From Octopus sinensis (lineage: Eukaryota), in assembly GCF_006345805.1 (NCBI RefSeq), contig NW_021836778.1, positions 1 through 20,678 on the forward strand: 20,678 nucleotides of DNA, written 5' to 3'. The translations under genes and the position numbers were made by a program. The notes beneath the pieces are model-generated. The model ran no database searches. It was given only the letters and a program-made list of their open reading frames with translations, and was not told where the DNA came from. Numbering within the stretch: the first letter of the stretch is position 1; each line of letters begins with the position of its first letter. This document shows positions 2,800 through 20,678 of the stretch, piece by piece.

Positions 2800-3938
2800 G
2801 TCTAAGCACGACTAAAAGATGGTAATTACATATTTAGATTTCCTTATTTTTGGTTTTAGACTAAATAAATGCGGCCCTCAATGGGAAATTATTAAAAACA
2901 AAGCTACTGCGTTTGACACCCCTGAATTAGTCGTTCTCTCTCAAATTTGTGTTTCAATACTGTGTCACATGACAATTCTATCAATTTTTCCTTTTCAAAA
3001 GTTTTAAATAAAAATTCATAATTTTCTTCATCAATAAATTGCTACTATATCCATGTGAACGTTTTATAGTCGAGATTTTTAAAATAATTAGCAAATCAGC
3101 AAATATGTTTTTGTTTGCTTCAATGTTTACTATGGGACAAAAATTATTTAAAAGTAGAAACATTTCATAGATTTTTTTCGTTATGTTCGATTTCCATAAT
3201 TTCAATTTTATAATCAATACTTTTACTTTGTCTTTTTGAGTGAATGATTACAGCTGTGGTCTCTGCACTAATTTATTTAATCTCACAAAAATTTGAGCCA
3301 AATAGGCAAATTTGACAATAAAGTTATCATTTCTGAACAATTTTGCATCTTCAATGTCATTTTCATCAATAAAATCTGCAACTTGATCTTTGAGCTCAAA
3401 CACCATTTTTGCACAAGATACCCAGCGGACCTCACAATAAAATAAAACTGATGAAACCAACTGATCCAAAAGAACTTAAGATATGTCATCGATGCTTTAT
3501 CTGTAGACGGTATTTGCCGTAATTGTTTGGCATAATATTCGCCAAACATTGTTTCAACCATATCAATGGCTGCTTGCAAAATTAGAGTTTCTCAGATATT
3601 GTGCAGTTTCTTAGATTTTCCAAATTTTGCAGGAAACTTTTTACGTAGCTAATAAAGCATTTGATGAGACAAAAATATGTTTTTTTAACGTTTCCGTTTG
3701 TTTATTGTATTCCTCTAATTTTATTGAAAAATTCTTCAGACTTATAGACATATTCAGAATTTATCGTTTCAAAATGTATTTTTAATTTTGATGGCTTCAT
3801 ACTATCTGATGTAATTGTTTTAAAACAAAGCAAACAGAGGGATATTTCCAAGCCATCAACAATAATACGCGTGAATTCTAATAATAAATCGGATGGACAA
3901 TTTTTTTTATCTTTGGAGTCGTAATAATTATATTCCAA
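2800..3938 (-). pseudogene. hAT (Buster/ZBED8-SCAND3-like) transposase remnant
   Basis: Collinear fragments: BED finger CLLCFKTITSDSMKPSKLKIHFET; AAIDMVETMFGEYYAKQLRQIP; FYCEVRWVS...FELKDQV...AYLAQIFVRLNKL; KLKLWKSNI; LIELSCDTVLKHKF. Frameshifts and internal deletions; no TIRs found; lower boundary approximate. Confidence 0.85.
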
Positions 3939-4366
3939 TTATTTTGACTATTTGAACCACCTTCAATATCTTTATTATTCGTAAATTTTCTTTTTTAACC
4001 ACTCGAAAATTTATCCATGTTGAACCTATTTAAATTAAATTTTTGTCAGAATATAATCACGATTTTTATATAAATCTAACTTAAAAAAAATATTTTTGAG
4101 AAGTGTCTCCCTTGACACAAGTCAAAGCTGAGTCTAATCCACAAGACGACTGTTAAGATAGTCTCCTTTTTTTAATCTGAGACGGTATTGTTTCAAATTC
4201 CTGAGAGCCTACAGTGGGGCAAAAAAGTCATGGAACGCTTGCATATTTTGATTAAATTTAATAATTCTCTACTAAAATAATATCAAAAATTGTAGTTTAA
4301 AAAGAAATTAGAAATATAAAAAATTTTAGATTAATTGTTGAAAAAACTAAACTTGAGATATTTATA

Positions 4367-5066
4367 CAGTACGACCTCGAATTGGGGAAAACCAAGTAGC
4401 GGGGAAATCCTCTTATTTGAGGAAAACCTTGTTTTGGGGAAAATATTTTCGCCATGCCTATAAAATACGATGATTTTTAATGAAATAAACCCCCTACTGG
4501 GGAAAACTAAATCAAAATGAAAAGATTAGAATTTAAAAAGATATACAGTCGGGTCATAAGGATAAAATGAGTTGTGAAGGATTTAACATCTCTAAAAGAA
4601 TCCTATACTAAAAAAGAAAAGGGAAGGAATCCTACCTCAAGGCTACATAACATCCGAAGGGACAATTGGATACGAATTGAATGCCTAGGTTTACGAGATT
4701 TTTCGTTATCTCAGGTCAAAAGGTTTCCCAATCAATGGGCCAACCTTACAGCTTATTACATGTAAAATTGCATATAGAAATTGAAATCACGATTTCACTG
4801 TTTCTAATGGATGACTTTACAGATTCAAGAAACAATTCGACATAAAATTCAGAATTTTACATGGAGAATCACGATAAGCTGATAAAGGATGTGCGGAAAA
4901 CTTCCGATCGACTTTCAATGATTAAAAATAAAAATTGTAGTTATTCGTCTCTGTTATATTATTAAGGTAGGATATCGAACAGGAGAGACCTAAATTTAAT
5001 GAAAAACCTTTTTTTGAAGAAAACCTCAAAATTGGGGAAAAATTTCTCCAATTCGAGGTCGCACTG
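4367..5066 (+). mobile_element. pogo/Tigger-like non-autonomous element, 700 bp
   Basis: 24-bp TIRs (4367-4390 CAGTACGACCTCGAATTGGGGAAA; 5043-5066, 22/24 match), TA on both sides (4365-4366, 5067-5068), repeated subterminal TTGGGGAAA-like motifs. Confidence 0.92.
4719..4904 (+). pseudogene. CENP-B-type HTH remnant of pogo/Tigger transposase
   Basis: KGFPINGPTLQ...DFTVSNG*LYRFKKQFDIKFRILHGES, matching the pattern GxPISGP...FxASxGWLxRFKxRxxI...GES; three in-frame stops. Confidence 0.85.
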
Positions 5067-5137
5067 TACTGCCATAATTAACGATTTTTATGTAAAATCA
5101 ATTTATTGAAGTAAAAAAGTCATGGAACGAAATCGAA

Positions 5138-5745
5138 TTAATATTTAGTTGCGTTTCTTTTTGCTAGTAGCACTGCTTCAAATCATTTGACATTCAAATA
5201 GACTAGTATTTTCCCTTTGTTCATAGCAAATTGCTTTTGTGAATATTTTTTGGTTTCCTTGAACCAAATTTTATTTTAAAAAATTTTACCTAAATGTTGA
5301 TTGGATTGAGGTCTGGTAATTACTTAGTTTCCAAAGCATTTATTTTGTCCCTTAGTAACCATTCAATAGTCATTATGGAATGTTCATTATTGTATCAAAT
5401 TTAATTTAGCGACCGAACGAAACGAATATTCTTCTAGGATTTCGCCATATTTTATTCAATTCGTTATTCTATCTATTACAAATAATTCACTGATGCCTGA
5501 TGATAAAAAACAGCCACACAGCACGATGCTTCTTCCCCTGTCCTTTATGGTAGGTATGGTGTATTTTGGTTATTTGTCTGATTGGATTTACGCCAAATTG
5601 AAGGCGTGTAATTCAGTCCAAAAAGTTGTATTTTTTATTCGTCCGACCATAAAATATTAATTATGAATTCATTTTCTTTATTTAAAAGATATTTGGTCTT
5701 TTTAATTCTTGCAGAAATGTGAATTTTCAGAAATATTTATTTGAA
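5138..5745 (-). pseudogene. Tc1 DDE transposase remnant
   Basis: Minus fragments in the expected order: ILWSDE*KIQLFG; IWRK...PKYTIPTIKDRGRSIVLCGCF; PDLNPI; EAVLLAKRNATKY* (stop at 5138-5140). Confidence 0.88.
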
Positions 5746-5769
5746 ATTCATGAAAATAGTTAATTAAAA

Positions 5770-6078
5770 TAAGTTGCAAAAGTGAAAGTAATCCCTGTTG
5801 TAATGACCTGGGATGGAATTGTCTCAAGATTTTTCAAGGGTCATCTTGATGTCCTCAAGCTGGAAGAAAGAGTGAGAGCATATATTCAGACAGTGGTTCT
5901 GAGGAAGACATTGGAAAGCATGCAAGCTGAAGAGAGACATGGTATATCGATACCTAGTGAGGAGAAAGCTGAAACGGAATGTCAACCAAGGGCAGCCTCA
6001 GAATGTGGAGTGTGCTTCGACGAGAACACACCCATACGGTCACTGGATTATGGGCCCAAAAAGAGAAGATTAAGCTAA
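5770..6078 (+). pseudogene. 5'-truncated R4-like retroelement: C-terminal end of REL endonuclease
   Basis: AKVKVIPVVMTWDGIVSRFFKGHLDVLKLEERVRAYIQTVVLRKTLESM aligns with AKVKIVPIVITWDGIVSTIYRKYMELLGIEERVRSYIQTVTLKATLESM of the 944-aa ORF; different C-terminal tail. Confidence 0.9.
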
Positions 6079-6476
6079 TTAATTAATTACTTTAACATGG
6101 ATTTGTTGTTTAAATAATAAATTAGTCTTTGTTTAAAATGAGTTAAAAAAAATAAAAGCTATCAAAAATAGTGATCATTATAAAAAATGTCCAATTAAAA
6201 AAAAGATAGTTGTTCCATGACTTATTTGTCCTTTTTCAATTGCATGATGAAGAGAATTTGCCTTGAACATTCCTGTAGCCAATATTATGACCTAGAACAG
6301 TGATTTTTAACGGGGCGCTAGAATTTAATTATTATAAATATTTGTATTAGTTTGTGTAAATCATTCTCACCTATTTTTCTATTAATTCTAAATTCAAATT
6401 GTCTTGTGTCTACTTAAACAAAAAATTTATTGATAATATGAATAAATATTTGTTAATTGTATTTAATATTTTACAG

Positions 6477-6901
6477 ATGTCTGATAAAAAACGACGTATA
6501 TATTCGAGTGAATACCTAAAGTTTGGAGTGATATCTTACGACTATAACAATTCACTTCCTATGTGTCTCCTTTGTTAAAAGGTCTTTAAAATGAATGAAG
6601 CCCTCAAGAATGCTAAATTATCTTAAGATTTGTCATCCTGAGAAACATGATGAAGATATTAATTATTTTTCTAATTTGAAATATAATTATGAAAATCGTC
6701 TTATGATAATCAAATATTTACAAAAAATTCAAAGATGCTGGAAAAAGACCTATTAGCATCATACAAAATATCACAATTGATAGCGAAATCAGGGAAATCT
6801 CATACTATTGGAGAGTCATTAATCTCATACTATTGGTGAGTGCTAAATTTAATGGTTGATCGTGATTCTGAATAGATAATATGATTTTGAAGCTAAAGTT
6901 A
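6477..6901 (+). pseudogene. hAT transposase, N-terminal part plus post-deletion segment up to the Helitron insertion
   Basis: MSDKKRRIYSSEYLKFG...LPMCLLC*KVF / MKPSRM...HPEK / LLASYKISQLIAKSGKSHTIGESLI, then after a large deletion YDFEAKV. ATG at 6477 is preceded by an acceptor-like TTTTACAG. Confidence 0.88.
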
Positions 6902-6923
6902 TCTTAATAATAAAATGGTATGG

Positions 6924-6973
6924 GAGAATTTATTAGTTTGTTGACTTTATTTTTGTATTAATTTATAAAAAAA

Positions 6974-7005
<32 letters not shown>
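6924..7005 (+). mobile_element. Extremely 5'-truncated poly(A) retro-insertion (3' end of a CRE-like element)
   Basis: Flanked by AAAATGGTATGG at 6912-6923 and 7006-7017 (TSD; edge ambiguous against the poly-A). 6921-6949 is identical over 29 nt to 7354-7382. Ends in A13-TTT-A27. Confidence 0.8.
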
Positions 7006-7009
<4 letters not shown>

Positions 7010-7017
7010 TGGTATGG

Positions 7018-7053
7018 TGTGTGTCTGTCTGTGTGTCTGTCTGTCTGTCTGTG
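7018..7053 (+). repeat. (TG)n/(TCTG)n microsatellite near the Helitron 5' end
   Basis: TGTGTGTCTGTCTGTGTGTCTGTCTGTCTGTCTGTG read directly. Confidence 0.9.
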
Positions 7054-7119
7054 CACACCCACATTCAAATTGTTACAAACCAGATCAAATTGTCAAAACC
7101 TTCCCTTTTGTAGTTATTC

Positions 7120-7369
7120 GATAAAGAGGCACAATAAAAGGTTTGGCCAATCGTTGTCGAGACTGGATGACTTTTGGTTTTGGCCAATCGTTGTCGAGAC
7201 TTCCGGCGTCTTTGGCTCCGGGACCCTCACTTCCCTAAAGAAATTGGGACATCTTTGTTCTTCGCGGTCCAAGGACCCTAGGGAATTTACTTTCCTCATT
7301 CAGAGGATCCTGCTGGCTGTCATGCGTGGCAACAGCTGTTCCCTCCGTCTCGCTGGGAGAATTTATTAG
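7120..7369 (+). pseudogene. CRE-like non-LTR retrotransposon REL endonuclease C-terminal fragment
   Basis: FWPIVVETSGVFGSGTLTSLKKLGHLCSSRSKDPREFTFLIQRILLAVMRGNSCSL matches the CRE-type pattern FxPxxVETxG...GDPR..FLxQRxSxAxxRGN. A 23-bp direct duplication lies at 7142-7164/7179-7201. Confidence 0.78.
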
Positions 7370-7463
7370 TTTGTTGACTTTACTTAGTAGTTTGACCCAT
7401 AAAAGGTTGATATCCTCTAAGAACCTTCCTGTCAAAAAATTTTAATAAGAAAGAATATCCTCG

Positions 7464-9906
7464 ATGATGAGGTCCCCCAAAACCTTCAAGCCAAAAAATT
7501 AAAAAAATTATTTTCTGCGTTTTTGTTAAAATGAACAACAAGAAAGTCCTCAACTCACATGATGTGGTCCCCCAAAACCTTCAAGCCAAAAAATTAAAAA
7601 AATTATTTTCTGCGTTTTTGTTAAAATGAACAACAAGAAAGTCCTCAACTCACATGATGTGGTCCCCCAAAACCTTCAAGCCAAAAAATTAAAAAAATTA
7701 TTTTCTGCGTTTTTGTTAAATGAACAACAAGAAAGTCCTCGACTCACATGATGTGGTCCCCCAAAACCTTCAAGCCAAAAAATTAAAAAAAATTATTTTC
7801 TGCGTTTTTGTTAAATGAACAACAAGAAAGTCCTCGACTCACATGATGTGGTCCCCCAAAACCTTCAAGCCAAAAAATTAAAAAAATTATTTTCTGCGTT
7901 TTTGTTAAAATGAACAACAAGAAAGTCCTCGACTCACATGATGTGGTCCCCCAAAACCTTCAAGCCAAAAAATTAAAAAAATTATTTTCTGCGTTTTTGT
8001 TAAATGAACAACAAGAAAGTCCTCGACTCACATGATGTGGTCCCCCAAAACCTTCAAGGTAAAAATTAAAAAAAATTATTTTCTGCGTTTTTGTTAAAAT
8101 GAACAACAAGAAAGTCCTCGACTCACATGATGTGGTCCCCCAAAACCTTCAAGCCAAAAAATTAAAAAAAATTATTTTCTGCGTTTTTGTTAAAATGAAC
8201 AACAAGAAAGTCCTCGACTCACATGATGTGGTCCCCCAAAACCTTCAAGCCAAAAAATTAAAAAAAATTATTTTCTGCGTTTTTGTTAAAATGAACAACA
8301 AGAAAGTCCTCGACTCACATGATGTGGTCCCCCAAAACCTTCAAGCTAAAAAATTAAAAAAAATTATTTTCTGCGTTTTTGTTAAAATGACAACAAGAAA
8401 GTCCTCGACTCACATGATGTGGTCCCCCAAAACCTTCAAGCCAAAAAATTAAAAAAAATTATTTTCTGCGTTTTTGTTAAAATGAACAACAAGAAAGTCC
8501 TCGACTCACATGATGTGGTCCCCCAAAACCTTCAAGCAAAAAATTAAAAAAAAAAAAAATTATTTTCTGCGTTTTTGTTTCAAAAAAATTATTTTCTGCG
8601 TTTTTGTTAAAATGAACAACAAGAAAGTCCTCGACTCACATGATGTGGTCCCCCAAAACCTTCAAGCCAAAAAATTAAAAAAATTATTTTCTGCGTTTTT
8701 GTTAAAATGAACAACAAGAAAGTCCTCGACTCACATGATGTGGTCCCCCAAAACCTTCAAGCTAAAAAATTAAAAAAATTATTTTCTGCGTTTTTGTTAA
8801 AATGACCAACAAGAAAGTCCTCGACTCACATGATGTGGTCCCCCAAAACCTTCAAGCCAAAAAATTAAAAAAATTATTTTCTGCGTTTTTGTTAAAATGA
8901 ACAACAAGAAAGTCCTCGACTCACATGATGTGGTCCCCCAAAACCTTCAAGCCAAAAAATTAAAAAAAATTATTTTCTGCGTTTTTGTTAAAATGACCAA
9001 CAAGAAAGTCCTCGACTCACATGATGTGTCCCCCAAAACCTTCAAGCCAAAAAATAAAAAAAATTATTTTCTGCGTTTTTGTTAAAATGAACAACAAGAA
9101 AGTCCTCGACTCACATGATGTGGTCCCCCAAAACCTTCAAGCCAAAAAATTAAAAAAATTATTTTCTGCGTTTTTGTTAAATGAACAACAAGAAAGTCCT
9201 CGACTCACATGATGTGGTCCCCCAAAACCTTCAAGCCAAAAAATTAAAAAAAATTATTTTCTGCGTTTTTGTTAAAATGAACAACAAGAAAGTCCTCGAC
9301 TCACATGATGTGGTCCCCCAAAACCTTCAAGCCAAAAAATTAAAAAAATTATTTTCTGCGTTTTTGTTAAAATGAACAACAAGAAAGTCCTCGACTCACA
9401 TGATGTGGTCCCCCAAAACCTTCAAGCAAAAAATTAAAAAAAATTATTTTCTGCGTTTTTGTTAAAATAAACAACAAGAAAGTCCTCGACTCACATGATG
9501 TGGTCCCCCAAAACCTTCAAGCCAAAAAATTAAAAAAAATTATTTTCTGCGTTTTTGTTAAAATGAACAACAAGAAAGTCCTCGACTCACATGATGTGGT
9601 CCCTCAAAACCTTCAAGCCAAAAAATTAAAAAAAAATTATTTTCTGCGTTTTTGTTAAATGAACAACAAGAAAGTCCTCGACTCACATGATGTGGTCCCC
9701 CAAAACCTTCAAGCCAAAAAATTAAAAAAAATTATTTTCTGCGTTTTTGTTAAATGAACAACAAGAAAGTCCTCGACTCACATGATGTGGTCCCCCAAAA
9801 CCTTCAAGCCCAAAAATTAAAAAAAAATATTTTCTGCGTTTTTGTTAAAATGAACGACAAGAAAGTCCTCGACTCACATGATGAGGTCCTCCACAACCTT
9901 CAAGCC
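7464..9906 (+). repeat. Tandem array, ~26 copies of a 94-96 bp unit (mode 95)
   Basis: Unit ATGAACAACAAGAAAGTCCTCGACTCACATGATGTGGTCCCCCAAAACCTTCAAGCCAAAAAATT(A)7-8TTATTTTCTGCGTTTTTGTTAAA. 25 ATG-anchored units counted from 7531 to 9850 plus a partial first unit; one 130-bp unit (8482-8611); no spacers. Confidence 0.98.
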
Positions 9907-10106
9907 TCGTGAGGCCATTAATTAGCTTAGCTATCTTTTTTCGATGACATAAATTCTTTTTTGTTAAATTTTCGTTAAAAAAATAAAATAAAAGCTCTAA
10001 TTGTTATCGACCATGAATAGACTGTGCAATTATCAGATTTTGAAAACCACTAAAAAGGAAAAAGCAAAAATTATTAGAGATTTACATAATTGATTCTTTT
10101 TAACTG

Positions 10107-10341
10107 CCGAAACTGACAAATTCGATTATGCTACTGTTTAGATTTCTTAAAAGATAGAGGCAAATAAAATTTAAATTAGTCATGTAAATTTCAATTTGCC
10201 TATATTTAAATCTCCTTGATTTAACAGGCTTTAATTTTTTTCCTTATAATACTACAAAGATGAAGCTGATTATCATTTTCTTTACCGAAACAGACAAGTT
10301 CGATTATGCTAAAGTTTCAATTCCTTTAAACATAGAGGCAA
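10107..10341 (+). repeat. Pair of degenerate 57-bp direct repeats (10107-10163, 10285-10341)
   Basis: Ungapped manual alignment 48/57 identical; core GACAA(A/G)TTCGATTATGCTA...ATAGAGGCAA. Confidence 0.8.
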
Positions 10342-10621
10342 TTAAGTATAATGGCTTTGATTGGATAATACACTTTACATAAATTTCACTAAATAAATTT
10401 ACGTAGAAAATTTAATATAAATTACTGATTCGCGTTTACAAAATCATAAGAATGTCCTATAAAGAGAGATCTGAGAATGTTAACAAACAAGAGAATATGA
10501 ACCATATAACAAAAAAAGAGAAACGAGGGAAGATGTGCTTAAATGGTGAGGGAACTTAGACAACAGCTGAACAAGGTCAGGACTGCTGTTAGACTCAACT
10601 ACGGGTAATAGAATTATGCAT

Positions 10622-11424
10622 TCTAGGTTAATTGTTTGGGATGAATGTACGATGGCTCATAAAGGCGCATTCAAGCAGTTGACCGAACATATAGAGATAT
10701 CAAGAATTGTAGCGACCATTTGTTTGGGGGAGCATTAGTTGTATTGGCAGGTGATTTTAGACAGACGCTGCCAATTATTCAAAGAGGGACGCCTGCGGAT
10801 GAATTGAATGCCTGCCTCAAATCGTCATATTTGTGGACACACGTGAAAAAGGTAAGCTTAGATGTAAATGTACATGCACATTTACAAGGCGTTAATAGCA
10901 TATTCCCACAAATCCTTCTAGATATTGGAAATGGGGCAATCACTTCAGAAATGCACGACCAGAAAATTAGGCTACCGGAAGAATTATGTATTTTCGTAGA
11001 AACAGCAGAAGAATTATTGAATGCCGTCTATTCCGAACTATCTGAACACTACGTGAATTTCGACTGGCTGCGTGAACGAGCTATATTAGCTCCACTTAAT
11101 GATGAGGTACTTAATATAAATTTAGATTTATTAATGAAAATCCCTGGCAGAGAAAGAATATATAAATCGGTCGACGTTATTATGGACCATGAAAGGGCCT
11201 GCGATAGATTTAAGAGACTACAATTTCCGCTGAAGATAAGTTTTGCTATGACAATAAACAAGGCCCAGGGACAGTCTTTAAAGGTAGTAGGCTTATTTTT
11301 AGAGAACGAGTGCTTTTCACATGGCCAGCTGTATGTGGGGTGCTCAAGGGTAGGTAGAAGAGAAATTTATTTATATTTGCCAAGGATGGACGGACTGCAA
11401 ACATCGTTTATCCACAGGCCTTAG
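10622..11424 (+). pseudogene. Helitron PIF1-like SF1B helicase, C-terminal part, frameshifted and internally deleted
   Basis: RLIVWDECTMAHK (Walker B) / AVDRTYRD...FGGALVVLAGDFRQTLPII...PADELNACLKSSYLW; RAILAPLN; FKRLQFPLKISFAMTINKAQGQSL; CFSHGQLYVGCSRV. The segment normally between YKSxD and FKRLQFP is absent. Confidence 0.93.
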
Positions 11425-11488
11425 AATAAGGTTATATCAAAGCAGGTCGCATTTATATATCTACATAAATTTATAGTTATTTAAGGAA

Positions 11489-11558
11489 ACTGCGAGCGTA
11501 GCGAGCAGGGCCTCCGCAGGAGCTAGCTCGCAGTGAGCGAAGCGAACTGCTGAGCTAG
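11489..11558 (+). other. Helitron 3' terminal hairpin region with two CTAG ends
   Basis: 9-bp inverted repeat ACTGCGAGC (11489-11497)/GCTCGCAGT (11526-11534); CTCC-GCA-GGAG hairpin before CTAG 11523-11526; GCAGT...ACTGC stem before CTAG 11555-11558. Confidence 0.8.
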
Positions 11559-11821
11559 TTTTTAATAAACATGGATATCAAAAATTTTGACTTACATATA
11601 GACAAAATATTCTCAATTGTTGAATGACATTGAAACAATAATAATAGCTTTTCCTTTAATATATCTATAGTTGAAGAGGATTTAGTGCTTTCTCCAATAT
11701 TTTGACCAAAATAAATAAATTGCAAATTGTGAATAGAAGAGATTTTAGACTTAATCTGTCAAATAGTGAAGCTGACATAAAGAAACTAACAAATTTTCAT
11801 CGGGCTCAAGGCAATCATTAA
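11559..11821 (+). pseudogene. hAT transposase C-terminal (dimerization-domain) part
   Basis: FNKHGYQKF* / KYSQLLNDIETIIIAFPLIYL / GFSAFSNILTKINKLQIVNRRDFRLNLSNSEADIKKLTNFHRAQGNH* matches the hAT C-terminal pattern FPxxYLxExGFS...RxxL...H. Confidence 0.88.
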
Positions 11822-12020
11822 AATTTTTAATTACTAAAAGTTTTGCTTATGAATATTCTTTTTAATTGAATAAATAAATTAGATAATAAGGGGGCGCTGA
11901 AATTTTGAAGCTTTAAAATTGTGTCAAAAGAGGGCGGTAGCTTGAAAAAAGATTAAGAACCACTGACCTAGAATATTAAATAAAGACGTGGATTCACTTT
12001 TTTGGCATTAAAAAATTTTT

Positions 12021-12237
12021 TGAATTGTTCAAAATTGAGGATTTGTTTAAGTTTTAACATGTGTGAATGAATTTCAAGGTTCGTTAAAGCAACGAGACTA
12101 TTAGTACAAATTCCATTTACAAAAGTATCAATTCTTTTAACAGCTTTGATACTTCTTTGTATTTACAACATTCAGATTCCAAATCGGAAGAAATTATTGA
12201 CATTGTTTGAATAGATTAAGGTATGAGAAGAGGTTAT
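12021..12237 (+). repeat. 217-bp direct repeat, copy 1 (partner 17403-17622)
   Basis: TGAATTGTTCAAAATTGAGG...GAGAAGAGGTTAT; the copies differ only by a 1-nt and a 2-nt indel as read by eye. Confidence 0.96.
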
Positions 12238-12393
12238 CTCACGTATTTTTCCTGTAACTTTCTTTATAGCCAATGAAAGGCCTAAATGAGCACATTTTGA
12301 CACAAATAAATAACCTGATTTATATTCACGTCAAAAGTTGTTATATATTTAAAAGATAATTCAAATCATGCTAATTAAAATTATTTTTAATAA

Positions 12394-15228
12394 TTAGACG
12401 GCTCTCAAATTTTTGCTTCCCGAGTTCCCCATAACTCCACTTTGATCTTCTCCGCCATGATCCTCAATCTCCTCGTGGGGCGTGCAGTCTCTGGGCCTCT
12501 TAAGGGACTTGCTGATCTTCATAGAGAAATTATATTTCCGCCAGTCCCTATTTACGGAATTTGCAGAGTCCAGAATTTCACTGAAGCCATGTTTGTACTC
12601 GACAAACATGCTCTCCAGAGTGGCCTTCAGCGTTACAGTCTGGATGTAAGACCGAACACGTTCTTCAATCCCAAGGAGCTCCATGTACTTGCGGTAGATT
12701 GTTGAAACGATTCCATCCCACGTAATGACAATTGGCACAATCTTCACCTTAGCCTTGTGAATCAGTTGTAATTCACTAGCTAAAATGTCGTATTTGTGCA
12801 GTTTTTCTACTTCCACACTCTTTAGGTTATCTATTGAAGTCACACCCACTTCAATAAGCCATATTAGGTTCTCTCTTTTGTCGTAGAGGAAAATATCGGG
12901 TTTGTTATATTGAATTTTCAACTCTGTTGGAATTGTTGTATCAACTCGTATTTCTGCCAAGGTGTTGCACATAATACTCTGGACAGAGTGATTTTTCAGT
13001 CTTCTGGATTTTTTGAATCCAAATCTACGGCACAAGTGCATGTGGATGCATCTCACAATTTCATTGTGTCTTCTCGTATAATCCGAATTAAGCATCCTGT
13101 TGCATCTAGTTGCCATGTGATCAACCGTCTTATTGGAAGATTTACAGTGTGGACATTTTGAATTAGGGTCTCTGAAAAAAATATTCCTGTCTTGAAGAAA
13201 TGAAAACATAGCTTCAGATTTAGGAGATATATTTCCTTTCTTAAGCCATGTTGAAGACGATAGAATATCAAAATTGTTATCATCAAGGGATTCAAATAGC
13301 TTCGAGTGAAGTGTTTTCTTCTTGATATTGGACAGTAAGGAATCAATCTGCAATCTATTCAGTGATTTGGTTATCTCTTCTTGGGTGTTCGTTCCATATT
13401 TACAATGCAGGAATTCTGTGATCGTGGCCATATGGGATTTTCTTTTCTGCTCGGCCCACAGAATTGCTGCCTTTCTTGGGGAGATTAACTTTCGCCTCTC
13501 CAGATTTTCACGAAAGTCAAACAGCATTTTTTCCGACCTGAAGGTAATCGAGGCAAGCCCTCTTCCAAGTTTATCCCTCGGCAAATATAGCCTTTCCTTA
13601 CAGGCTGGTTTCATATGAATATTTAGATCCATTAACAGCTTCCTGACAAATTTGTCAATTTCATCAAAAACGGACGGTTCCAAATCCAGAAGGCCGATAT
13701 AATAATTGTACAAAGATAAGGCATGTTCATTAATTGCCTTAAACAAATTCACCGAATTTAGTTTCGTCTTCGACAATCTTTCGATACGTTGTTGAACCTC
13801 AATCCGTAAATTTTTCAAAACTTCTTCTTTAACAACCTGACTAAACTTATTTTCCAATACACCCAAATAACGGTAACTATCCAGTCCATCCAACAGTTTG
13901 GCATCATTTCTCAACAAACAACTATTCGTTGCCGACTTCTCACAATTCTTTTCCAAACCCGAAGCTTTAAAAAATAAATCCACGTCTTTCATCATACACC
14001 CGAGTGTGACCTCATCTTTGGCGAGCAGTTTCAAATCATCAATGAACAAAAAATGGTTCGTAGAAAAAAACACTGAATTTTCTTGATTGGTATTGACTGA
14101 TAAATTTGGGTATTTAGCCGATAACAATCTGCTCAACGGATCCAAAGTCAAAATGAACAACTGAGGAGACAGGGAATCTCCTTGGAGTATTCCACGTTCT
14201 ATGTTAACAATTCCTAGATGCTGCTTTCCTAATTTGAGGGAGACCTTCCAATTTGGAATTATTGACATTACAAACTTTGTTATCCATTCAGGAAGCCCTG
14301 AGTTTTTCAGAATAACTGCAAGGAATTCGTGATTGATTGAGTCAAAGGCTTTTTTTACGTCTACCCATGAAGAAAATAATTTGTACTCATGTGACCTGTT
14401 CACACAACAGTTAATAAGTGCTTGCTCCTTTGCACCTTGACAATGCCTCTTAGTGCCAAGTTGACACTCAGAGATTAGATCGTATACTTCCACATACTCA
14501 GCAATTTTCTCATTTACACACTTTGTGACGAGTTTATAAAGGCACGGCATACAGGTAATTGGTCTGAAATCACCGGCTTCAGTGGAATTATCCTTTTTCG
14601 GAATAAGATAAGTTATCCCGGTATAAAACCAACTCTGAGGTTGACTGCTTCCAGTAATGATATTTCTGATCTCATCAAATAGAAATTTATGTAGGGAGTC
14701 CAATTTTTTAATGAAGAAGTTGTAAACTCCATCGCAGCCAGGAGCTTTCCAGTTGGGGAGAAATTCGATAATGTTTAAAATGAAGGTGTCATTAACATCA
14801 GGTTCGTGATATTCGGCACCAGTGACTCTTCTATTCACACCCAATTGATACTCACTTATATCTCTTTTTTTCCATACATTAGTCCAAAACTTCAAGCAAC
14901 GGTCAGTGTCAATACACTCATTATGTTGGATGGTAGAATTGAGTCTCCTATAAAAGGATTTTCTATACAACTCAAAATTTCTGTTATCCTTCCTGAACTG
15001 TCTTCTTGAATCAGAAATATTCACTTTCTTCATGAGAATTTTAATTTTATCATTTATGGCTGTCGAAATTCTTTCAAATTCACCATTTTTCAATTTTTTA
15101 TAATTAAAAGAGCAAAGAATATCCGTTGCTTTCTTCTTCTCCTCATCACTTACTGTTGAGGTAAAAAACTTTGTAATGATAGACTCATTTTCAGTTAAAG
15201 ACTCAATCTTCCTTTTCACATTGTCCAC
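12394..15228 (-). CDS. Reverse transcriptase plus CCHC knuckle plus restriction-like endonuclease (R2-group, R4/Dong-like); native N-terminus cut off by insertion
   Basis: WKAPGCDG, FRPITC, QLGTK, WVDVKKAFDSINH, RGILQGDSLSPQLF, FIDDLKL, YRYLGV, RLYLPRDKLGRGL (R4-like), CPHC...HMATRC, RHNEIV, KPDIF...LIEVGVT, KLHKY. 944 codons without stop. Confidence 0.95.
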   Translation of the reverse strand: MDNVKRKIESLTENESIITKFFTSTVSDEEKKKATDILCSFNYKKLKNGEFERISTAINDKIKILMKKVNISDSRRQFRKDNRNFELYRKSFYRRLNSTIQHNECIDTDRCLKFWTNVWKKRDISEYQLGVNRRVTGAEYHEPDVNDTFILNIIEFLPNWKAPGCDGVYNFFIKKLDSLHKFLFDEIRNIITGSSQPQSWFYTGITYLIPKKDNSTEAGDFRPITCMPCLYKLVTKCVNEKIAEYVEVYDLISECQLGTKRHCQGAKEQALINCCVNRSHEYKLFSSWVDVKKAFDSINHEFLAVILKNSGLPEWITKFVMSIIPNWKVSLKLGKQHLGIVNIERGILQGDSLSPQLFILTLDPLSRLLSAKYPNLSVNTNQENSVFFSTNHFLFIDDLKLLAKDEVTLGCMMKDVDLFFKASGLEKNCEKSATNSCLLRNDAKLLDGLDSYRYLGVLENKFSQVVKEEVLKNLRIEVQQRIERLSKTKLNSVNLFKAINEHALSLYNYYIGLLDLEPSVFDEIDKFVRKLLMDLNIHMKPACKERLYLPRDKLGRGLASITFRSEKMLFDFRENLERRKLISPRKAAILWAEQKRKSHMATITEFLHCKYGTNTQEEITKSLNRLQIDSLLSNIKKKTLHSKLFESLDDNNFDILSSSTWLKKGNISPKSEAMFSFLQDRNIFFRDPNSKCPHCKSSNKTVDHMATRCNRMLNSDYTRRHNEIVRCIHMHLCRRFGFKKSRRLKNHSVQSIMCNTLAEIRVDTTIPTELKIQYNKPDIFLYDKRENLIWLIEVGVTSIDNLKSVEVEKLHKYDILASELQLIHKAKVKIVPIVITWDGIVSTIYRKYMELLGIEERVRSYIQTVTLKATLESMFVEYKHGFSEILDSANSVNRDWRKYNFSMKISKSLKRPRDCTPHEEIEDHGGEDQSGVMGNSGSKNLRAV

Positions 15229-15713
15229 CCAGTTTGATGGTGAAAATTCTTTCTTTGTAATTCGATGATAAGTGCATTGTGAGGAATATATGTCACCGGC
15301 CGTAGGCTGGACGGCGCCGTTCGTTGGACACTTTCAAAATTTCATTTATTTCAATTTTGCTCATATAAAACATACCTTAATTTTTTCCAAGTCCCATTTT
15401 AAGCCTATTTTCGATGAATTTGGTGACTTTTGAGAAAATAAGAGAGCTAACAAAACCAACCACACCGTTTTTTCTACGATTATTGATTAAAAATCATAAT
15501 GTTTATTATATTTCGAGGTTTACCATTTTAAAATAATACTTTTTAATAGTTATAAAATCGAATTTATTTGTAAAATTTATTAAATAAAATAGACGTTGGC
15601 ATCCTAACAGCAATTTTAGAGATGACCAGTACAGATTTCTAAAGGGAACCCTAACCAAACCTTAATTGCTGCACACGTATTACTTCTTATCCAGCCTTAG
15701 GCTTTCAGGTAGT

Positions 15714-15890
15714 AAGTCCAACCTAAACCAATTGGCCTACGGCCGGATTTTTTTGGAATCCAACTATTCCCCTATGCGGCCTTCGGCCGCGGTGTGTAGT
15801 TTTTAAAGTCCAACCTAAACCAATTGGCCTACGGCCAGATTTTTTTTGGAATCCAACTATTCCCCTATGCGGCCTTCGGCCGCGGTGTGT
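15714..15890 (+). repeat. Two tandem 84/85-bp subterminal repeats with GC hairpins
   Basis: 15714-15797 and 15806-15890; each has GGCCTACGGCC (shares CCTACGGCC with the TIR) and a perfect GCGGCC-TTC-GGCCGC hairpin. Confidence 0.93.
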
Positions 15891-15953
15891 TTGCTTCTTA
15901 TTTTAAGTTGAAAAACTTTTTATACAATTTTTAAAATTTTATTAACCAAAAAT

Positions 15954-16592
15954 TTAAACTAATCGTTTGAGTCTACTAATGTGAATGGATTCAATTTCTC
16001 TTCCATTTTCATCTTTTAACACACATAAATTATTTTTTTTGTCGACGATATAAAATTTCTCTGAAGATATTTCATCGTGAAGAGGATATTTCCTATTATT
16101 CACATTTGCGTCTCTATCATGTCGGATAATAACAGAATCTCCGACATTTATATCCTCTTCGTCGAATTTCCATTTCCTTTTTTTAGACATTTTCGCTATA
16201 TTGCTCATAAATATTAAACCTGGCAAACTTCACACCGGCTTACAACAGTAAGGACCTCTTTTCTCGTAATCGGATAAATTTCTTCACAGAGTTTGGAATA
16301 AAGCCTATCACGACCAAAATGGTTTAAATTGTGTTCAGTCTACAAAATTTGATTTTATATTTACCTCAATTGTTTTCATCTTAAATTCATTTTGTTCGAT
16401 AGTGAAGAATCTTAGTTTTTTACCATTTTTCAGAATGAAAATCACAGATTGCTCATAAATAAAATTTTTTGAGAGAGAACGTATTTTAAAACGTTCTTTC
16501 CTCTGTGTTTCATCTTCTATCAAGCCAGTTTCAATATAATTAATTAATTTTTCAACAAAGGATTGCAATAGATACAACAAAACCATTCTCAC
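15954..16592 (-). pseudogene. Integrase-type transposase remnant: N-terminus, HHCC zinc-binding motif and C-terminal domain; DDE core missing
   Basis: After a frameshift from ORF 16335-16592: EHNLNHFGRDRLYSKLCEEIYPITRKEVLTVVSRCEVCQV (H-x3-H-x28-C-x2-C, 16217-16339). It directly abuts ...INVGDSVIIRHD...HISRLKRL, resembling integrase C-terminal domains. Confidence 0.78.
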
Positions 16593-16746
16593 GCGATTCT
16601 TAATTTAAACAAAAATTAGGAATATTTAATAAATTATTTAAATAATTTTGATTTTTTAATGGAGATTATTATTGTAAAAATATTTTTAATTAAAAATATT
16701 GCTTAGTGTCCACTCAACGGCGCCGTCCATCCTACGGCCGGTGACA

Positions 16747-17414
16747 ATATATCAAAGTAGAAATGTCATTAATCGATTTTGGGGGATTATCTGATGTATA
16801 TTGGATCAAAGCCCTGTTAATCAAATCGATAACAAGATGATTAATATATTGAGCAGGGACTTTCGGAGTAGGCATTCTTTCTTCAAAAGGTATTGAACTG
16901 TTTTCTTCAATCTGAATCAACAATTCTTCATAGCATTTAGTATATAAGGTTAGATTGGTGCCACCTTTATCGTTGCTGGAGGCATCATTCCTAGCGTTAT
17001 CTCTTACTGAAGCATTATTTCTAAATGAAGCAATAAGCCTCTTTAGTTCAGATATTGATTTCTTCTTCCCAAACTTCAGATTGAAGTAATCCACAGTCAA
17101 AGGCCATCCTCCTCTAGGCATCCGCTTAAACCGATCTTTGACAAGCCCGAAGAGCTGAGTCACCCATTCACCAGGATTCGAAGAGTTGACAGAGTCACAC
17201 AAGCTTTCAGAGGTAGCAGACTTGTCGATATCTGCTGGGGAGGTCCAGTGAGTGAATTTCCGGAGAAATAAGGACGGCCATGAACATTTAAATCCACTCT
17301 TCCATTACAATTTTCACTATTATTTTGAGTAGATGCGTCCATAGATATGGTTATTCCATTTTGTAAACCAACCATCCGTACATCACAAGAAATTTTTTTA
17401 AATGAATTGTTCAA
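16747..17414 (-). pseudogene. N-terminal part of the R4-like ORF (upstream of the insertion; one apparent frameshift near 17200-17300)
   Basis: ...PKSINDISTLIY joins in frame to SSQCTYHRITKKEFSPSNWVDNVKRKIE when 15286-16746 is removed. ATG-containing ORF 17160-17414 overlaps in another frame. Confidence 0.8.
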
Positions 17415-17622
17415 AATTGAGGATTTGTTTAAGTTTTAACATGTGTGAATGAATTTCAAGGTTCGTTAAAGCAACGAGACTATTAGTACAAATTCCATTT
17501 ACAAAAGTATCAATTCTTTTAACAGCTTTGATACTTTCTTTGTATTTACAACATTCAGATTCCAAATCGGAAGAAATTATTGACATTGTTTGAATAGATA
17601 TTAAGGTATGAGAAGAGGTTAT
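17403..17622 (+). repeat. 220-bp direct repeat, copy 2 (partner 12021-12237)
   Basis: Abuts the 5' end of the minus-strand retroelement; near-identical to 12021-12237. Confidence 0.96.
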
Positions 17623-17907
17623 TTAATGGTGAATTCTAATTATAATTTTTCTTATATTGATATTTCCGGGTATAATCTGTTAGCTAAATTATATGAATTA
17701 ATTAATCAGTAAAAATTGCAAAACGGCTGCGTGAATGGGTCTGCGAGATCTCTAATGTTCCAAGTATTTAATTAATAGTGGATTAATCGAGCTATGATAG
17801 TCCAATCTCGTAAAGTAAAATGTGATGGTAAAATTACTAAAATCAATAAATCTTATCTTGACTTTTGTTAAGTCTTTATTTATTAATAAACAAGAGAAAA
17901 ATCTTAA

Positions 17908-18150
17908 TTGGCAGATAGCCAGAGAATTGCCTCTGACTATGGCCATAGATATTCGTTTGGTTAAATACCGGTACTCACACGGATTGCCGGTAACCTTTTC
18001 GATTAGTGAGCCGCTGGAGTAGGGTCCGAGTAGAAGGCACCTGTATTCCTGACGTCTCAACAGCCAGGGGAACAAACACTCTGCCAATTCCGATTCCAGC
18101 GTATTTCTCACTCTTTCTCTTCTCAGTCCGTTCAGACGGGGTTCTCGGAT
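17908..18150 (-). pseudogene. Second CRE-like REL endonuclease C-terminal fragment
   Basis: ERTEKRKSEKYAGIGIGRVFVPLAVETSG then (frameshift) EKVTGNPCEYRYLTKRISMAIVRGNSLAI; same motif order as 7120-7369 but divergent. Confidence 0.78.
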
Positions 18151-18605: not shown

Positions 18606-18920
18606 CTAAATACTATAAAGTTCAGAATCAAACTTAAAATATAATTCCCTCAAATCATCAAAACGTCCCAGCAACTCATCAAAACCAATCCCAATAGTAG
18701 ATGAAACACAAACTGCCTGAAACAAAACAATCTTTAAAAATACCTCAATCGTCTCATTAAAATGATCAAGAACCGAATCAAGTGACGTAATGAGGTTAGA
18801 TGCATGTGATGTATCTTGGTCAAGAGCTTCCCAGTAAACAACAGAGTTTCTTATCCACTCCAAGACGACTCCAGTGCCATCCAAATCACACTGAAATTCA
18901 TCAATATGTTTAGACCTTAT
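18606..18920 (-). pseudogene. Unassigned open frame, possible host-gene remnant
   Basis: Stop-to-stop frame of about 104 codons with no ATG and protein-like composition; no motif recognised. Confidence 0.2.
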
Positions 18921-19067
18921 TTAAACAAAGTAATAACGGCAAATTAAATTTAAGCATTGAACAGGTGTAGAGCATGTTGACCATAAAAGTAACTGGGTCA
19001 CGACCACGTTTGAATCGGTGATATACAACACCACCGTGGGAAATGATGATGCCTGTAAAATATTAAT

Positions 19068-19294
19068 CTGGGGAGACAGAGAGTCGCCTTGGAGTATACC
19101 ACGTTCTATATTAACAGTTCCTGGCTGTTTTTTCCCAATCTCAGAGAGACTTTCCAGTTTTGAATAATTGACATAATAAAACTAGTTATCAAAATAAGCA
19201 ATCCAGAGTTTTCCAGGATTTCAACAAGAAAGTCATGACTAACTGAGTCAACTGCCTTATCATGAATTTTATGGAATAACATCCCATATTTATT
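19068..19294 (-). pseudogene. Second copy of the R4-like RT fragment (see 243-469)
   Basis: Same sequence within the long repeat; ...GTVNIERGILQGDSLSPQ. Confidence 0.9.
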
Positions 19295-19300
19295 CTAAAT

Positions 19301-19470
19301 TTAAAAATTATTATATTGATTCAACAAATTATTATATTGATTCGAAAAATTATTATATGGTTCGAAAAATTATTATATGATTCGAAAAGTTATTTATTGG
19401 TTCGAAAAATTATTATATGATTCGAAAAGTTATTATATTGGTTCGAAAAATTATTATATTGATCCGAAAA
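19301..19470 (+). repeat. Second copy of the 20-21-nt minisatellite
   Basis: Same array as 476-647 with two additional 1-nt deletions. Confidence 0.95.
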
Positions 19471-19714
19471 CCCTATATAAAAATAGTTGGTGTTGGGGGG
19501 AAGATGGTTACCTTAAAATCGTAAGAATCGCTTTCATTATCCGATTCTTGGTTAATTAACTAAAAATGAGACATCTATAATTATAATTTTAAATCGCAAC
19601 TGATGTTTATTGATGCCAGGATGATGTTTTACTATTGTTTTGGATCCACATTTTTGGTCAATACCAGTGTCTTACTAGGCAGAAGACATAACATATTCAG
19701 TCCTGTAAGGCACT

Positions 19715-19843
19715 CCTTCGTCTACTTAGAAAGTTGGTGATCAATAGTTTGAGCTTTCCTAGAAACTTGTTTTAAATTATTTTCCTTAATAGAATCTTTC
19801 TCAAAACTAAGTCGAAAGCTATGTCTATATCGACGGAACAGAG
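19715..19843 (-). pseudogene. Second copy of the LINE-type RT fragment (see 892-1020)
   Basis: Same sequence within the long repeat. Confidence 0.45.
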
Positions 19844-20678
19844 TTAATATAATTGATAAATTGCCTTCTTTCATCAGAAGGTCGGCAGTCGGCAACTCCA
19901 GAGAGAGTTCGTTGAAGGGGAGTAGAACCTCTCGGGCAACATTTTGGTATCAACAATTAGTTAAATTCAACAATTAATAGCATATAAACAAAGAATTATT
20001 TCCGACTATGTCCAAAAAGATTCTTTATGAGATTTCGTTTTTTGAATGAATTTTAAATTTGCCAAATAACCAAAAAAATATTGCATCCATAACTTGCATT
20101 GACAAAAACGGAATTACAGGAAAAATGATTTATTTTCTTAAAGAAAAACTACCCTTGAAAAATGGAAATACAATTTGGGATGCTAAAGCAAGTGATAACA
20201 GAAAAGGTTTAATGACTGGTACGGATTACCAGGAATAATGTCTAACATGTTATTAAAACAGCATGAAACTCCACCCAGATTCAATTACCATCTTATTATT
20301 ATAACATCTAGACTCCCAGGCAATAAAAACTATAATACTCATGTTTAATTTATCAATACAAGCACCATTCCGGACTTTAGAAAAAGTCTTATATAACGAC
20401 TAGCAAACCAAACAAAACTCATAGCAAATTAAGAAATGATGAAAGTAGAAGATAGTTTTTCCTGTTTTATAAGTTTTTTTTATTAAAAGCGGGTGTTGAA
20501 CGCTAGGAAATTCATGACATCCCATTTATATTTAGAATCCGTATGTGGTGAGATGTCAATGACGCTTAACTCGTCAACCCCTAACGGAGCTCCCGGCACA
20601 GGCAGCCGGTGTGAGTTGAACCCGAGACCGAGAAAGTTGCCAGCAAATATCGAATAAGGTAGTTAATTAAATGACATA

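Follow-up and report, generated by a model that had tools for sequence, protein, structure and literature searches.

A probable three-level transposon nest in Octopus sinensis: a Helitron with a tandem array inside an old hAT element

The first 20,678 nucleotides of contig NW_021836778.1 of the Octopus sinensis assembly GCF_006345805.1 (NCBI RefSeq, forward strand, hereafter the window) contain what is very probably a three-level transposon nest that is most likely no longer mobile. Its history would run from an internally deleted hAT element through the entry of a Helitron and of a long interspersed nuclear element (LINE), left as a short stub, to the growth of an array of 95-bp repeats. The window is AT-rich eukaryotic DNA (GC content 26-43%) crowded with transposon remains. 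For comparison we used DNA of the same hAT family from three further O. sinensis contigs (loci L001, L002 and L004), which provided four hAT copies (L001 9594-11906; L002 11480-13786; L004 9468-11300; L004 16200-18033). An earlier interpretation by a model that saw only the letters and their open reading frames (ORFs), referred to here as the sequence-only reading, had proposed a hAT enclosing a Helitron that in turn encloses a LINE stub, a LINE fragment, the array and a helicase remnant, and this order of nesting agrees with our results. The components of the nest are as follows.

6290-6297: left copy of the hAT target-site duplication, ACCTAGAA; fits nnnTAnnn and abuts the inverted end
6298-6311 (+): left terminal inverted repeat of the hAT, CAGTGATTTTTAAC, followed by one GGGGCGCT subterminal motif
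6477-6880 (+): decayed N-terminal part of a hAT transposase, FAM200/ZBED5/ZBED8-like, Buster type, with many stops and frameshifts
6881-6901 (+): 21 bp of hAT C-terminal coding sequence (..YDFEAKVI), from the deletion breakpoint to the Helitron; collinear with L001 11399-11419
6902-11558 (+): non-autonomous, putatively canonical Helitron of 4,657 bp, 5'-TC and CTAG-3', A/T flanks, no duplication
6902-6923 (+): uninterrupted Helitron 5' terminus, 22 bp, TCTTAATAATAAAATGGTATGG, including at its end the 8-bp left duplication of the LINE stub
6924-7009 (+): LINE stub, severely 5'-truncated, 86 bp; end of an ORF, short 3' untranslated region (UTR) and A13-TTT-A27 tail
7018-7052 (+): (TGTC)n / TGTGTGTCTGTC microsatellite
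7053-7400, 3' limit approximate (+): fragment of a non-LTR (non-long terminal repeat) retrotransposon, comprising the C-terminal part of a restriction-enzyme-like (REL) endonuclease and the start of the 3' UTR
7464-9906 (+): tandem array of 25 full monomers of 94-96 bp (95-bp repeat) and a partial one
9907-10582 (+): AT-rich spacer of 676 bp between the array and the helicase remnant
10583-11424 (+): RepHel helicase remnant (PIF1, Pfam E = 7.9e-16) with its natural stop codon retained
11489-11534 (+): GC-rich 3' hairpin with a 13-bp stem and one bulge
11536-11556 (+): small second hairpin, overlapping the first two bases of the terminal CTAG (11555-11558)
11559-11821 (+): hAT C-terminal coding remnant, FNKHGYQKF...RGFSAFSNILTK...AQGNH and a stop; aligns to L001 11420-11742
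11952-11965 (-): right terminal inverted repeat of the hAT, reverse complement CAGTGGTTCTTAAT
11966-11973: right copy of the hAT target-site duplication, ACCTAGAA, identical to 6290-6297

The outermost element is a hAT unit of 5,668 bp (6298-11965) with CAGTG inverted ends that is flanked on both sides by a perfect 8-bp ACCTAGAA. These are the limits given by the sequence-only reading, and both a base-by-base check and the ends of the hAT family bear them out. The two terminal inverted repeats, CAGTGATTTTTAAC and CAGTGGTTCTTAAT, match each other at 11 of 14 bases. The four O. sinensis copies start with CAGTGATTCTTAACGGGGGCGCTGG and finish with ..GGTTAAGAACCACTG, the consensus ends of the family being CAGTGATTCTTAAC... 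and ...GTTAAGAACCACTG; because the same family ends are present in all four copies, those in the window are not chance matches. Perfect 8-bp duplications flank three of the four copies (TTTTAACC, GTTTAGAC and TGATATAT), and the pattern nnnTAnnn fits every case (ACC-TA-GAA, TTT-TA-ACC, GTT-TA-GAC and TGA-TA-TAT) and also the right flank of the copy in L002 (GTA-TA-GAG). This pattern is the duplication consensus of the Buster family and differs from the Ac-type pattern (PMC3517528). The N-terminal remnant in the window shares 77-93% amino acid identity with FAM200B-like, ZBED8-like and ZBED5-like proteins of O. sinensis, which bear the domains PF27073 (FAM200-ZBED5 RNase-like) and PF14291, and ZBED5 is identical with Buster1 (PMC3606216). 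The earlier assignment to the Buster type is thus in line with both the duplications and the coding remnants. Pfam gave no significant match on the hAT remnants of the window or on the hAT C-terminal region; the catalytic core is deleted in the copy of the window.

The extent of this deletion becomes apparent from the alignment with the longer copy in L001: positions 6324-6880 of the window correspond to L001 9673-10275, and the next aligned stretch begins at L001 ~11399. The breakpoint lies at ~6880/6881 and ~1.1 kb of internal coding region is missing. From there on, the C-terminal region with its ..ERGFSA.. motif is again collinear with L001, where the counterpart of the C-terminal remnant reads ..ERGFSAVSNILTKKRNKL..AQGSH before the stop. 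Without its insert, the hAT of the window is a non-autonomous derivative of 1,011 bp. It is only 80-83% identical to the O. sinensis copies and full of stops and frameshifts, each of its 14-bp ends departs from the family consensus at one position, and it has a single left subterminal motif (GGGGCGCT) as compared with three (GGGGGCGCTGG) in the O. sinensis copies. The latter share 98.6-99.7% identity with each other and fall into at least two size classes of internal-deletion derivatives. Because the copies are so similar and deletion derivatives with perfect duplications occur among them, the family has probably been active recently in O. sinensis; two copies of 1.83 kb and of identical type lie 6.7 kb apart in L004. 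The copy in the window, in turn, appears to be an old, internally deleted and non-autonomous element of the Buster type.

Inside this hAT, a block of 4,657 bp (6902-11558) begins with TC directly after A6901 and ends with CTAG directly before T11559. When position 6901 is joined to position 11559, the codons GAA GCT AAA GTT ATT TTT AAT AAA CAT GGA (EAKVIFNKHG) are restored, as the sequence-only reading had pointed out. At this join, no interruption exists in any of the four O. sinensis hAT copies, which carry GAAGCTAAAGTCATTTTCAACAAATATGG (EAKVIFNKYG; YDFEAKVIFNKYGYQQFW) and therefore read EAKVIFNK.G contiguously; the outcome that the sequence-only reading had named as its own refutation, a lack of such contiguity in other hAT copies, thus did not occur. 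The insertion point corresponds to TATGACTTTGAAGCTAAAGTCA/TTTTCAACAAATATGGATATCAA in these copies, just upstream of the ..ERGFSA.. motif in the C-terminal region (junction context ..AAAGTCA/TTTTCAAC..), and no base has been lost or duplicated at the join in comparison with them. Because four of four related copies are continuous across the join, an empty site exists and the reading frame given earlier is correct; the join itself is a true empty site in the true hAT reading frame. We had considered this frame to be arbitrary, as the N-terminal remnant is in another one, and dropped the idea because the O. sinensis copies prove the frame to be the true one downstream of the deletion. The proposed insertion between A and T without target duplication likewise stands, with an ambiguity of one T. 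Resolution to the base, stated earlier for all junctions, is reached at the outer limits of the hAT, of the Helitron and of the LINE stub; where LINE fragment, array, spacer and helicase remnant meet inside the Helitron, there is no comparator by which the joints could be fixed.

The block has the features expected of a Helitron, whose hallmarks are a 5'-TC, a CTAG-3', flanking A and T, no target duplication and no inverted ends (PMC4778049). It starts with TCTTAATAATAAAATGG and finishes with ...GCGAACTGCTGAGCTAG, and the two ends have no inverted match. Likewise, when the 5' 66 bp were aligned locally with the reverse complement of the last 190 bp, a comparison that would have revealed subterminal inverted repeats, only weak AT-rich matches emerged. 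If the LINE stub is taken out, the 5' end would read contiguously TCTTAATAATAAAATGGTATGGTGTGTGTC. The helicase remnant has the orientation expected for a Helitron and corresponds, in a tblastn comparison, to residues ~1213-1572 of a relative of 1,573 amino acids and thus reaches its natural C-terminus; it contains one frameshift near 10681 and lacks ~91 residues, among them the Pif1 2B domain. There is no Rep domain in the remnant and the Helitron is therefore non-autonomous. The statement of the sequence-only reading that neither a hAT nor a Helitron transposase is present in the window was correct. Among 1.8 billion representative proteins, the closest full-length relatives of the helicase comprise ~1,500 amino acids with the domain sequence Helitron_like_N, PIF1 and 2B, and terminate with the helicase, without an apurinic/apyrimidinic (AP) endonuclease domain. 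In the window, the stop codon of the helicase is followed by only 134 bp up to the end of the element, which leaves no space for such a domain. Because the full-length relatives end with the helicase, we take the insert to be a Helitron of the canonical type and not a Helentron.

A related remnant is present in Octopus bimaculoides, where the region 10001-12266 of locus L003 (P0043 / LOC128251090) is annotated as an 'uncharacterized protein' of 304 amino acids and represents a Helitron helicase remnant. The annotated intron (11762-12038) splices out the frameshifted region of the 2B domain, and the gene model is probably a transposon pseudogene. The idea of a conserved truncated helicase, with a 2B deletion common to P0043 and the window, was abandoned because the 'deletion' is this annotated intron over a frameshifted region. 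No comparable array is found upstream of the helicase remnant in L003.

The Helitron is loaded with foreign and repetitive DNA. Its 5' end is interrupted by the LINE stub, which is flanked by an 8-bp duplication of its own (TGGTATGG, 6916-6923 and 7010-7017). The region from 6921 to 6952 matches 7354-7385, the end of the ORF of the LINE fragment, over 32 bp with 97% identity, and the LINE in L001 has a similarly short 3' UTR followed by an A-run. The fragment contains an ORF of 116 codons (7019-7369, stop at 7367-7369) whose product includes ..WPIVVETSGVFG..RGNS.. and is 38% identical over 92 residues to the translation of L001 2496-2753 (E = 1e-14); it also matches window positions 17899-18121(-). 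The similarity of this peptide is confined to the extreme C-terminal region of LINEs with an REL endonuclease. In L001, a related ORF (4398-5813) that lies downstream of a reverse transcriptase ORF contains RPD..D..K..KY..FAVETSG. A direct BLASTP comparison of the peptide with the reverse transcriptase-endonuclease ORF of 944 codons in the window (see below) gave no similarity. The same LINE family seems to have left both the fragment and the stub in the Helitron. The two lie within 8 bp of each other (6916-7060), beside the (TGTC)n microsatellite, which hints at a preference of this LINE family for targets next to microsatellites. Such a preference is found in some LINEs that bear an endonuclease.

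The array of 2.4 kb is highly homogeneous, with a mean pairwise identity of 97% between monomers and no fall-off with distance. One monomer is a variant of 130 bp that arises from an internal duplication of 29 bp at 8553-8608, and degenerate monomers occur at the left edge of the array, out to about 7405. We found no above-chance similarity between the monomer and the neighbouring sequence that could indicate its origin. Because the homogeneity of the array is far above the conservation of the surrounding shells, local amplification is the reading that fits best, and we infer that the array has grown or been homogenised in place and was not imported ready-made. The 95-bp repeat is documented here as a tandem array, not as a satellite. 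The spacer that follows contains an imperfect direct repeat of 73 bp (10095-10167 and 10273-10345, 79% identity) and has no protein, Rfam or octopus-locus match.

Taken in order, the events would have begun with an internally deleted Buster hAT of ~1.0 kb that was pasted into ACCTAGAA by a transposase acting in trans, giving rise to the 8-bp duplication. A non-autonomous canonical Helitron would then have entered the C-terminal coding remnant of the hAT at an A/T target (..AAAGTTA/TTTTTAAT..) by rolling-circle ('peel-and-paste') transposition, without a duplication. This Helitron would have retained the 3' third of an autonomous element, i.e., the last ~360 RepHel codons, the stop, a 134-bp 3' UTR with the hairpins and the CTAG, and its upstream part would have been replaced by the 22-bp 5' end, the LINE fragment, the 95-bp array and the AT-rich spacer. 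In a third step, the 86-bp stub with its poly(A) tail, from the same family as the internal fragment, would have been added by target-primed reverse transcription with an 8-bp duplication of its own, and unequal exchange or slippage would eventually have enlarged the array in place or made its monomers uniform. Of this history, the boundaries and the empty site were observed directly, as were the family assignments and the duplication around the stub. The order of the first two steps is a reconstruction, and the hAT could already have contained the Helitron when it last moved. The LINE fragment and the array may have reached the Helitron by capture, by chimeric formation from a 5' end and a downstream 3' end, or by later insertion.

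Several observations do not sit easily with this history. The boundary of the insert can be shifted by one T, i.e., the block can be delimited as TC...CTAG between A and T or as C...CTAGT between T and T. The 3' hairpin folds with -17.9 kcal/mol, a value only slightly superior to that of shuffled sequences (z = -1.97; 8 of 200 shuffles reach an equal stability), and 24 nt lie between the main hairpin and the 3' end of the Helitron as opposed to 11 nt in Helraiser. Since the Helitron is available in one copy only, the empty site alone sets its 5' end, without a family consensus. Finally, the breakpoint of the hAT deletion is located 21 bp from the Helitron, a proximity with a chance of ~4% in a 1-kb element; the two events could have come together by chance or could be linked.

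The ambiguous T would also permit the insert to be a Helentron-type non-autonomous element (HINE) that is inserted between T and T and has a layout of microsatellite and array, and a microsatellite of 4-nt units (7018-7052) is indeed present upstream of the central array, as in oyster HINEs (PMC7492417). We nevertheless regard this as very unlikely, since in the insert the LINE fragment separates the microsatellite from the array, subterminal inverted repeats are absent apart from weak AT-rich matches, the closest full-length relatives combine Rep with a C-terminal PIF1 and lack the AP-endonuclease domain, and the 134 bp after the helicase stop are too short for it. Still less probable is an origin of the 4.66-kb block as filler DNA that was taken up during the repair of a double-strand break or gap and contained the dead 3' part of a Helitron. 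The repair event could perhaps have been the one that caused the hAT deletion, given the breakpoint only 21 bp away, a 5' 'TC' is low in information, and the 5' end is not validated by a second copy. However, the 21 bp between breakpoint and insert are exactly collinear with the intact hAT copies, as is the sequence on the right, with no base gained or lost, and for this reason the insert is not filler at the hAT breakpoint. Moreover, the right boundary coincides with a Helitron 3' terminus (hairpins, CTAG, then T) 134 bp past the helicase stop and the left one has TC after an A, a combination whose joint chance at independently fixed boundaries is ~1e-3 or less. The least credible alternative is an assembly artefact in which mis-joined repeats mimic nesting. 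The two ends of the window are near-identical (1-1855 and 18828-20678, 99.5%), so the assembly of the region is possibly unusual, and many differences between the monomers of the array are changes in homopolymer length that resemble long-read errors, but mis-joining would not jointly produce a perfect 8-bp duplication beside hAT ends typical of the family, a base-exact empty site and an A/TC...CTAG/T junction.

The nest of a canonical Helitron within a hAT is therefore the reading that we retain, and the question arises whether it can move. The sequence-only reading had seen intact cis-acting ends on both shells and a vehicle with two routes for spreading a satellite, in which the hAT transposase or RepHel, supplied in trans, would move the 95-bp array and seed it elsewhere. 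It is true that both shells have recognisable termini, that the related O. sinensis hAT family is young and active-looking (98.6-99.7% identity between copies, several deletion derivatives) and that oyster elements of the Helitron family carry tandem arrays and disperse satellite-like repeats (PMC7492417). Nevertheless, we consider such a vehicle unlikely. The searches for second copies covered protein space, JGI metagenomes and ~85 kb of octopus loci and carry little weight for the source genome; in these collections, neither the Helitron termini nor the 95-bp repeat nor the composite was found a second time. The best matches of the helicase ORF among 5.8 billion proteins were just ~50% identical, with no second copy, and the peptides encoded by the array and by the LINE fragment had no match at E <= 1e-3. 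Exact look-up of the 944-aa and 234-aa ORFs of the window returned no record. The metagenomes were scanned for the satellite core and for the 3' end of the Helitron, with 0 matches each, a fuzzy search for the Helitron termini in the octopus loci found none, and the 95-bp monomer does not occur elsewhere in the window, in the octopus loci or in the metagenomes.

The state of the ends points in the same direction. In Helraiser, the left end is essential for transposition and the determinants of cleavage reside in the terminal ~40 bp (PMC4778049). In the window, the LINE stub splits the Helitron 22 bp from its 5' end, i.e., inside the equivalent of these 40 bp, and the present-day competence of the element is doubtful for that reason. 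The same is true for the hAT, whose competence is doubtful because the copy is old (80-83% identity) and has fewer subterminal motifs: two of the three left GGGGGCGCTGG motifs are missing, one GGGGCGCT is left, and each 14-bp end is off consensus by one mismatch. The homogeneity of the array (97%, far above that of the shells) fits growth in place instead of the proposed spread. Nothing indicates that the nest is still able to move, and we consider the composite most likely an immobile fossil. A slim chance is left that the insert belongs to a dispersed family of canonical Helitrons that acquired a LINE fragment and the 95-bp repeat and seeds the latter in an octopod genome, with the hAT ends as a second, cut-and-paste route.

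The nest is not the only transposon-derived material in the window, and the region can be described as a graveyard of the REL-endonuclease LINE type. About 420 bp from the right flank of the hAT ends an uninterrupted ORF of 944 amino acids on the minus strand (12394-15228) with a reverse transcriptase domain (E = 6.6e-27), followed by a CCHC-like motif (CPHCKSS..H..C), by KPDIF..EVGV..K..KY and by a weak restriction-endonuclease match. This ORF may represent a LINE with a restriction-enzyme-like endonuclease, possibly still autonomous. A direct repeat of 236 bp (96%; 12010-12237 and 17387-17622) brackets the ORF together with a miniature inverted-repeat transposable element (MITE) and minus-strand ORF pieces at 16732-17414; it could stem from LINE copies arranged head to tail or form the terminal direct repeats of an element. 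The MITE-like element (15291-16746, 1,456 bp) sits between the 944-aa ORF and these ORF pieces and has GC-rich terminal inverted repeats of 42 nt (TGTCACCGGCCGTAGGCTGG...), AT-rich flanks and an internal tandem duplication of 93 bp (15714-15890).

On the other side of the nest, the C-terminal fragment of a LINE endonuclease domain (5782-6078, plus strand, ..VIPVVMTWDGIVS..) is situated ~210 bp upstream of the hAT. Further upstream follow an element of 704 bp (4365-5068) with inverted ends of 26 nt (TACAGT...) and TA flanks, which resembles a MITE of the Tc1/mariner type, and a second, unrelated and internally deleted hAT remnant on the minus strand (3248-3938; ..CLLCFKTITSDSMKPSKLKIHFET.., then ..LFYCEVRWVS..) that shares only ~36% protein identity with the first hAT family. 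Rfam and tRNA scans of the window gave no match. The two similar window ends are offset by 18,827 bp. They may stem from a tandem or segmental duplication of ~18.8 kb, of which the window would contain one unit and the beginning of the following one, or from an overlap between the two ends of the contig. In the tandem case, the nest as a whole may be present a second time just beyond the window. A 21-bp minisatellite (AAAAATTATTATATTGATTCG, ~8 copies) is located within the duplicated ends, at 478-647 and 19303-19470.

Nested insertions are routine in repeat-rich genomes, and to our knowledge the origins of satellites are essentially undescribed in cephalopods. Repeats make up ~66% of the genome of Octopus vulgaris (PMC13282606). 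The Helentron derivatives of oysters are a well-documented case of rolling-circle elements with internal tandem arrays (PMC7492417), the same source cites Drosophila Helentron derivatives with tandem arrays, and in clams such arrays are found inside inverted-repeat MITEs (PMC3879986). Against this background, the nest described here is an ordinary kind of transposon pile-up that is cleanly resolved. What is mildly new is a canonical Helitron as the carrier of an array in a cephalopod and a nest resolved to the base. For the curation of cephalopod repeat libraries, it defines a Buster-type hAT family together with deletion derivatives and provides a non-autonomous canonical Helitron of which both termini are present, as well as a LINE family with two insertions only a few bases apart.

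Compared with canonical animal Helitrons such as Helibat and Helraiser (PMC4778049), the insert shares the TC and CTAG termini, the lack of inverted ends, the 3' palindrome, insertion between A and T without duplication, a PIF1 helicase of the RepHel type on the 3' side and foreign DNA in its body. It differs from them in that it is devoid of a Rep domain and retains just the final quarter of RepHel, without 2B, that its hairpin is spaced by 24 nt (11 nt in Helraiser), that its 5' end is split by the stub and that one copy is known. The enclosing hAT resembles Buster elements and MITEs (TcBuster; Mar in Drosophila, PMC3517528; the ZBED5/8-related elements, PMC3606216) and Buster deletion derivatives in its 8-bp nnnTAnnn duplications, in its short CAG... 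inverted ends, in an internal deletion that leaves both the N- and C-terminal coding ends in place and in that the closest proteins are named FAM200B/ZBED8/ZBED5-like; in contrast to these systems, the copy in the window is old (80-83% identity), has fewer subterminal motifs and bears a foreign insert of 4.7 kb. DTC84 of the clam Donax trunculus (PMC3879986) is likewise a non-autonomous inverted-repeat DNA transposon of a mollusc with an internal tandem array; in our case, the array belongs to the nested Helitron, not to the hAT, and a high copy number is not evident here. With Cg_HINE and pearl of oysters and DINE-1 of Drosophila (PMC7492417), the insert has in common that it is a rolling-circle-family element with a microsatellite, a central array, no duplication and a proposed role as a carrier of satellite repeats, and with Cg_HINE and pearl also the mollusc host. 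Unlike HINEs, it has no subterminal inverted repeats, its helicase relatives have no endonuclease domain, its target is most simply read as A/T, and it is 4.7 kb long, retains a helicase remnant and gives no evidence of dispersal. Should the Helitron with its 95-bp array turn out to be multi-copy, a canonical Helitron would have seeded a satellite in a cephalopod; a true, dispersed family would mean that the link with satellites, known for Helentrons of bivalves and Drosophila, also holds for canonical Helitrons and in cephalopods.

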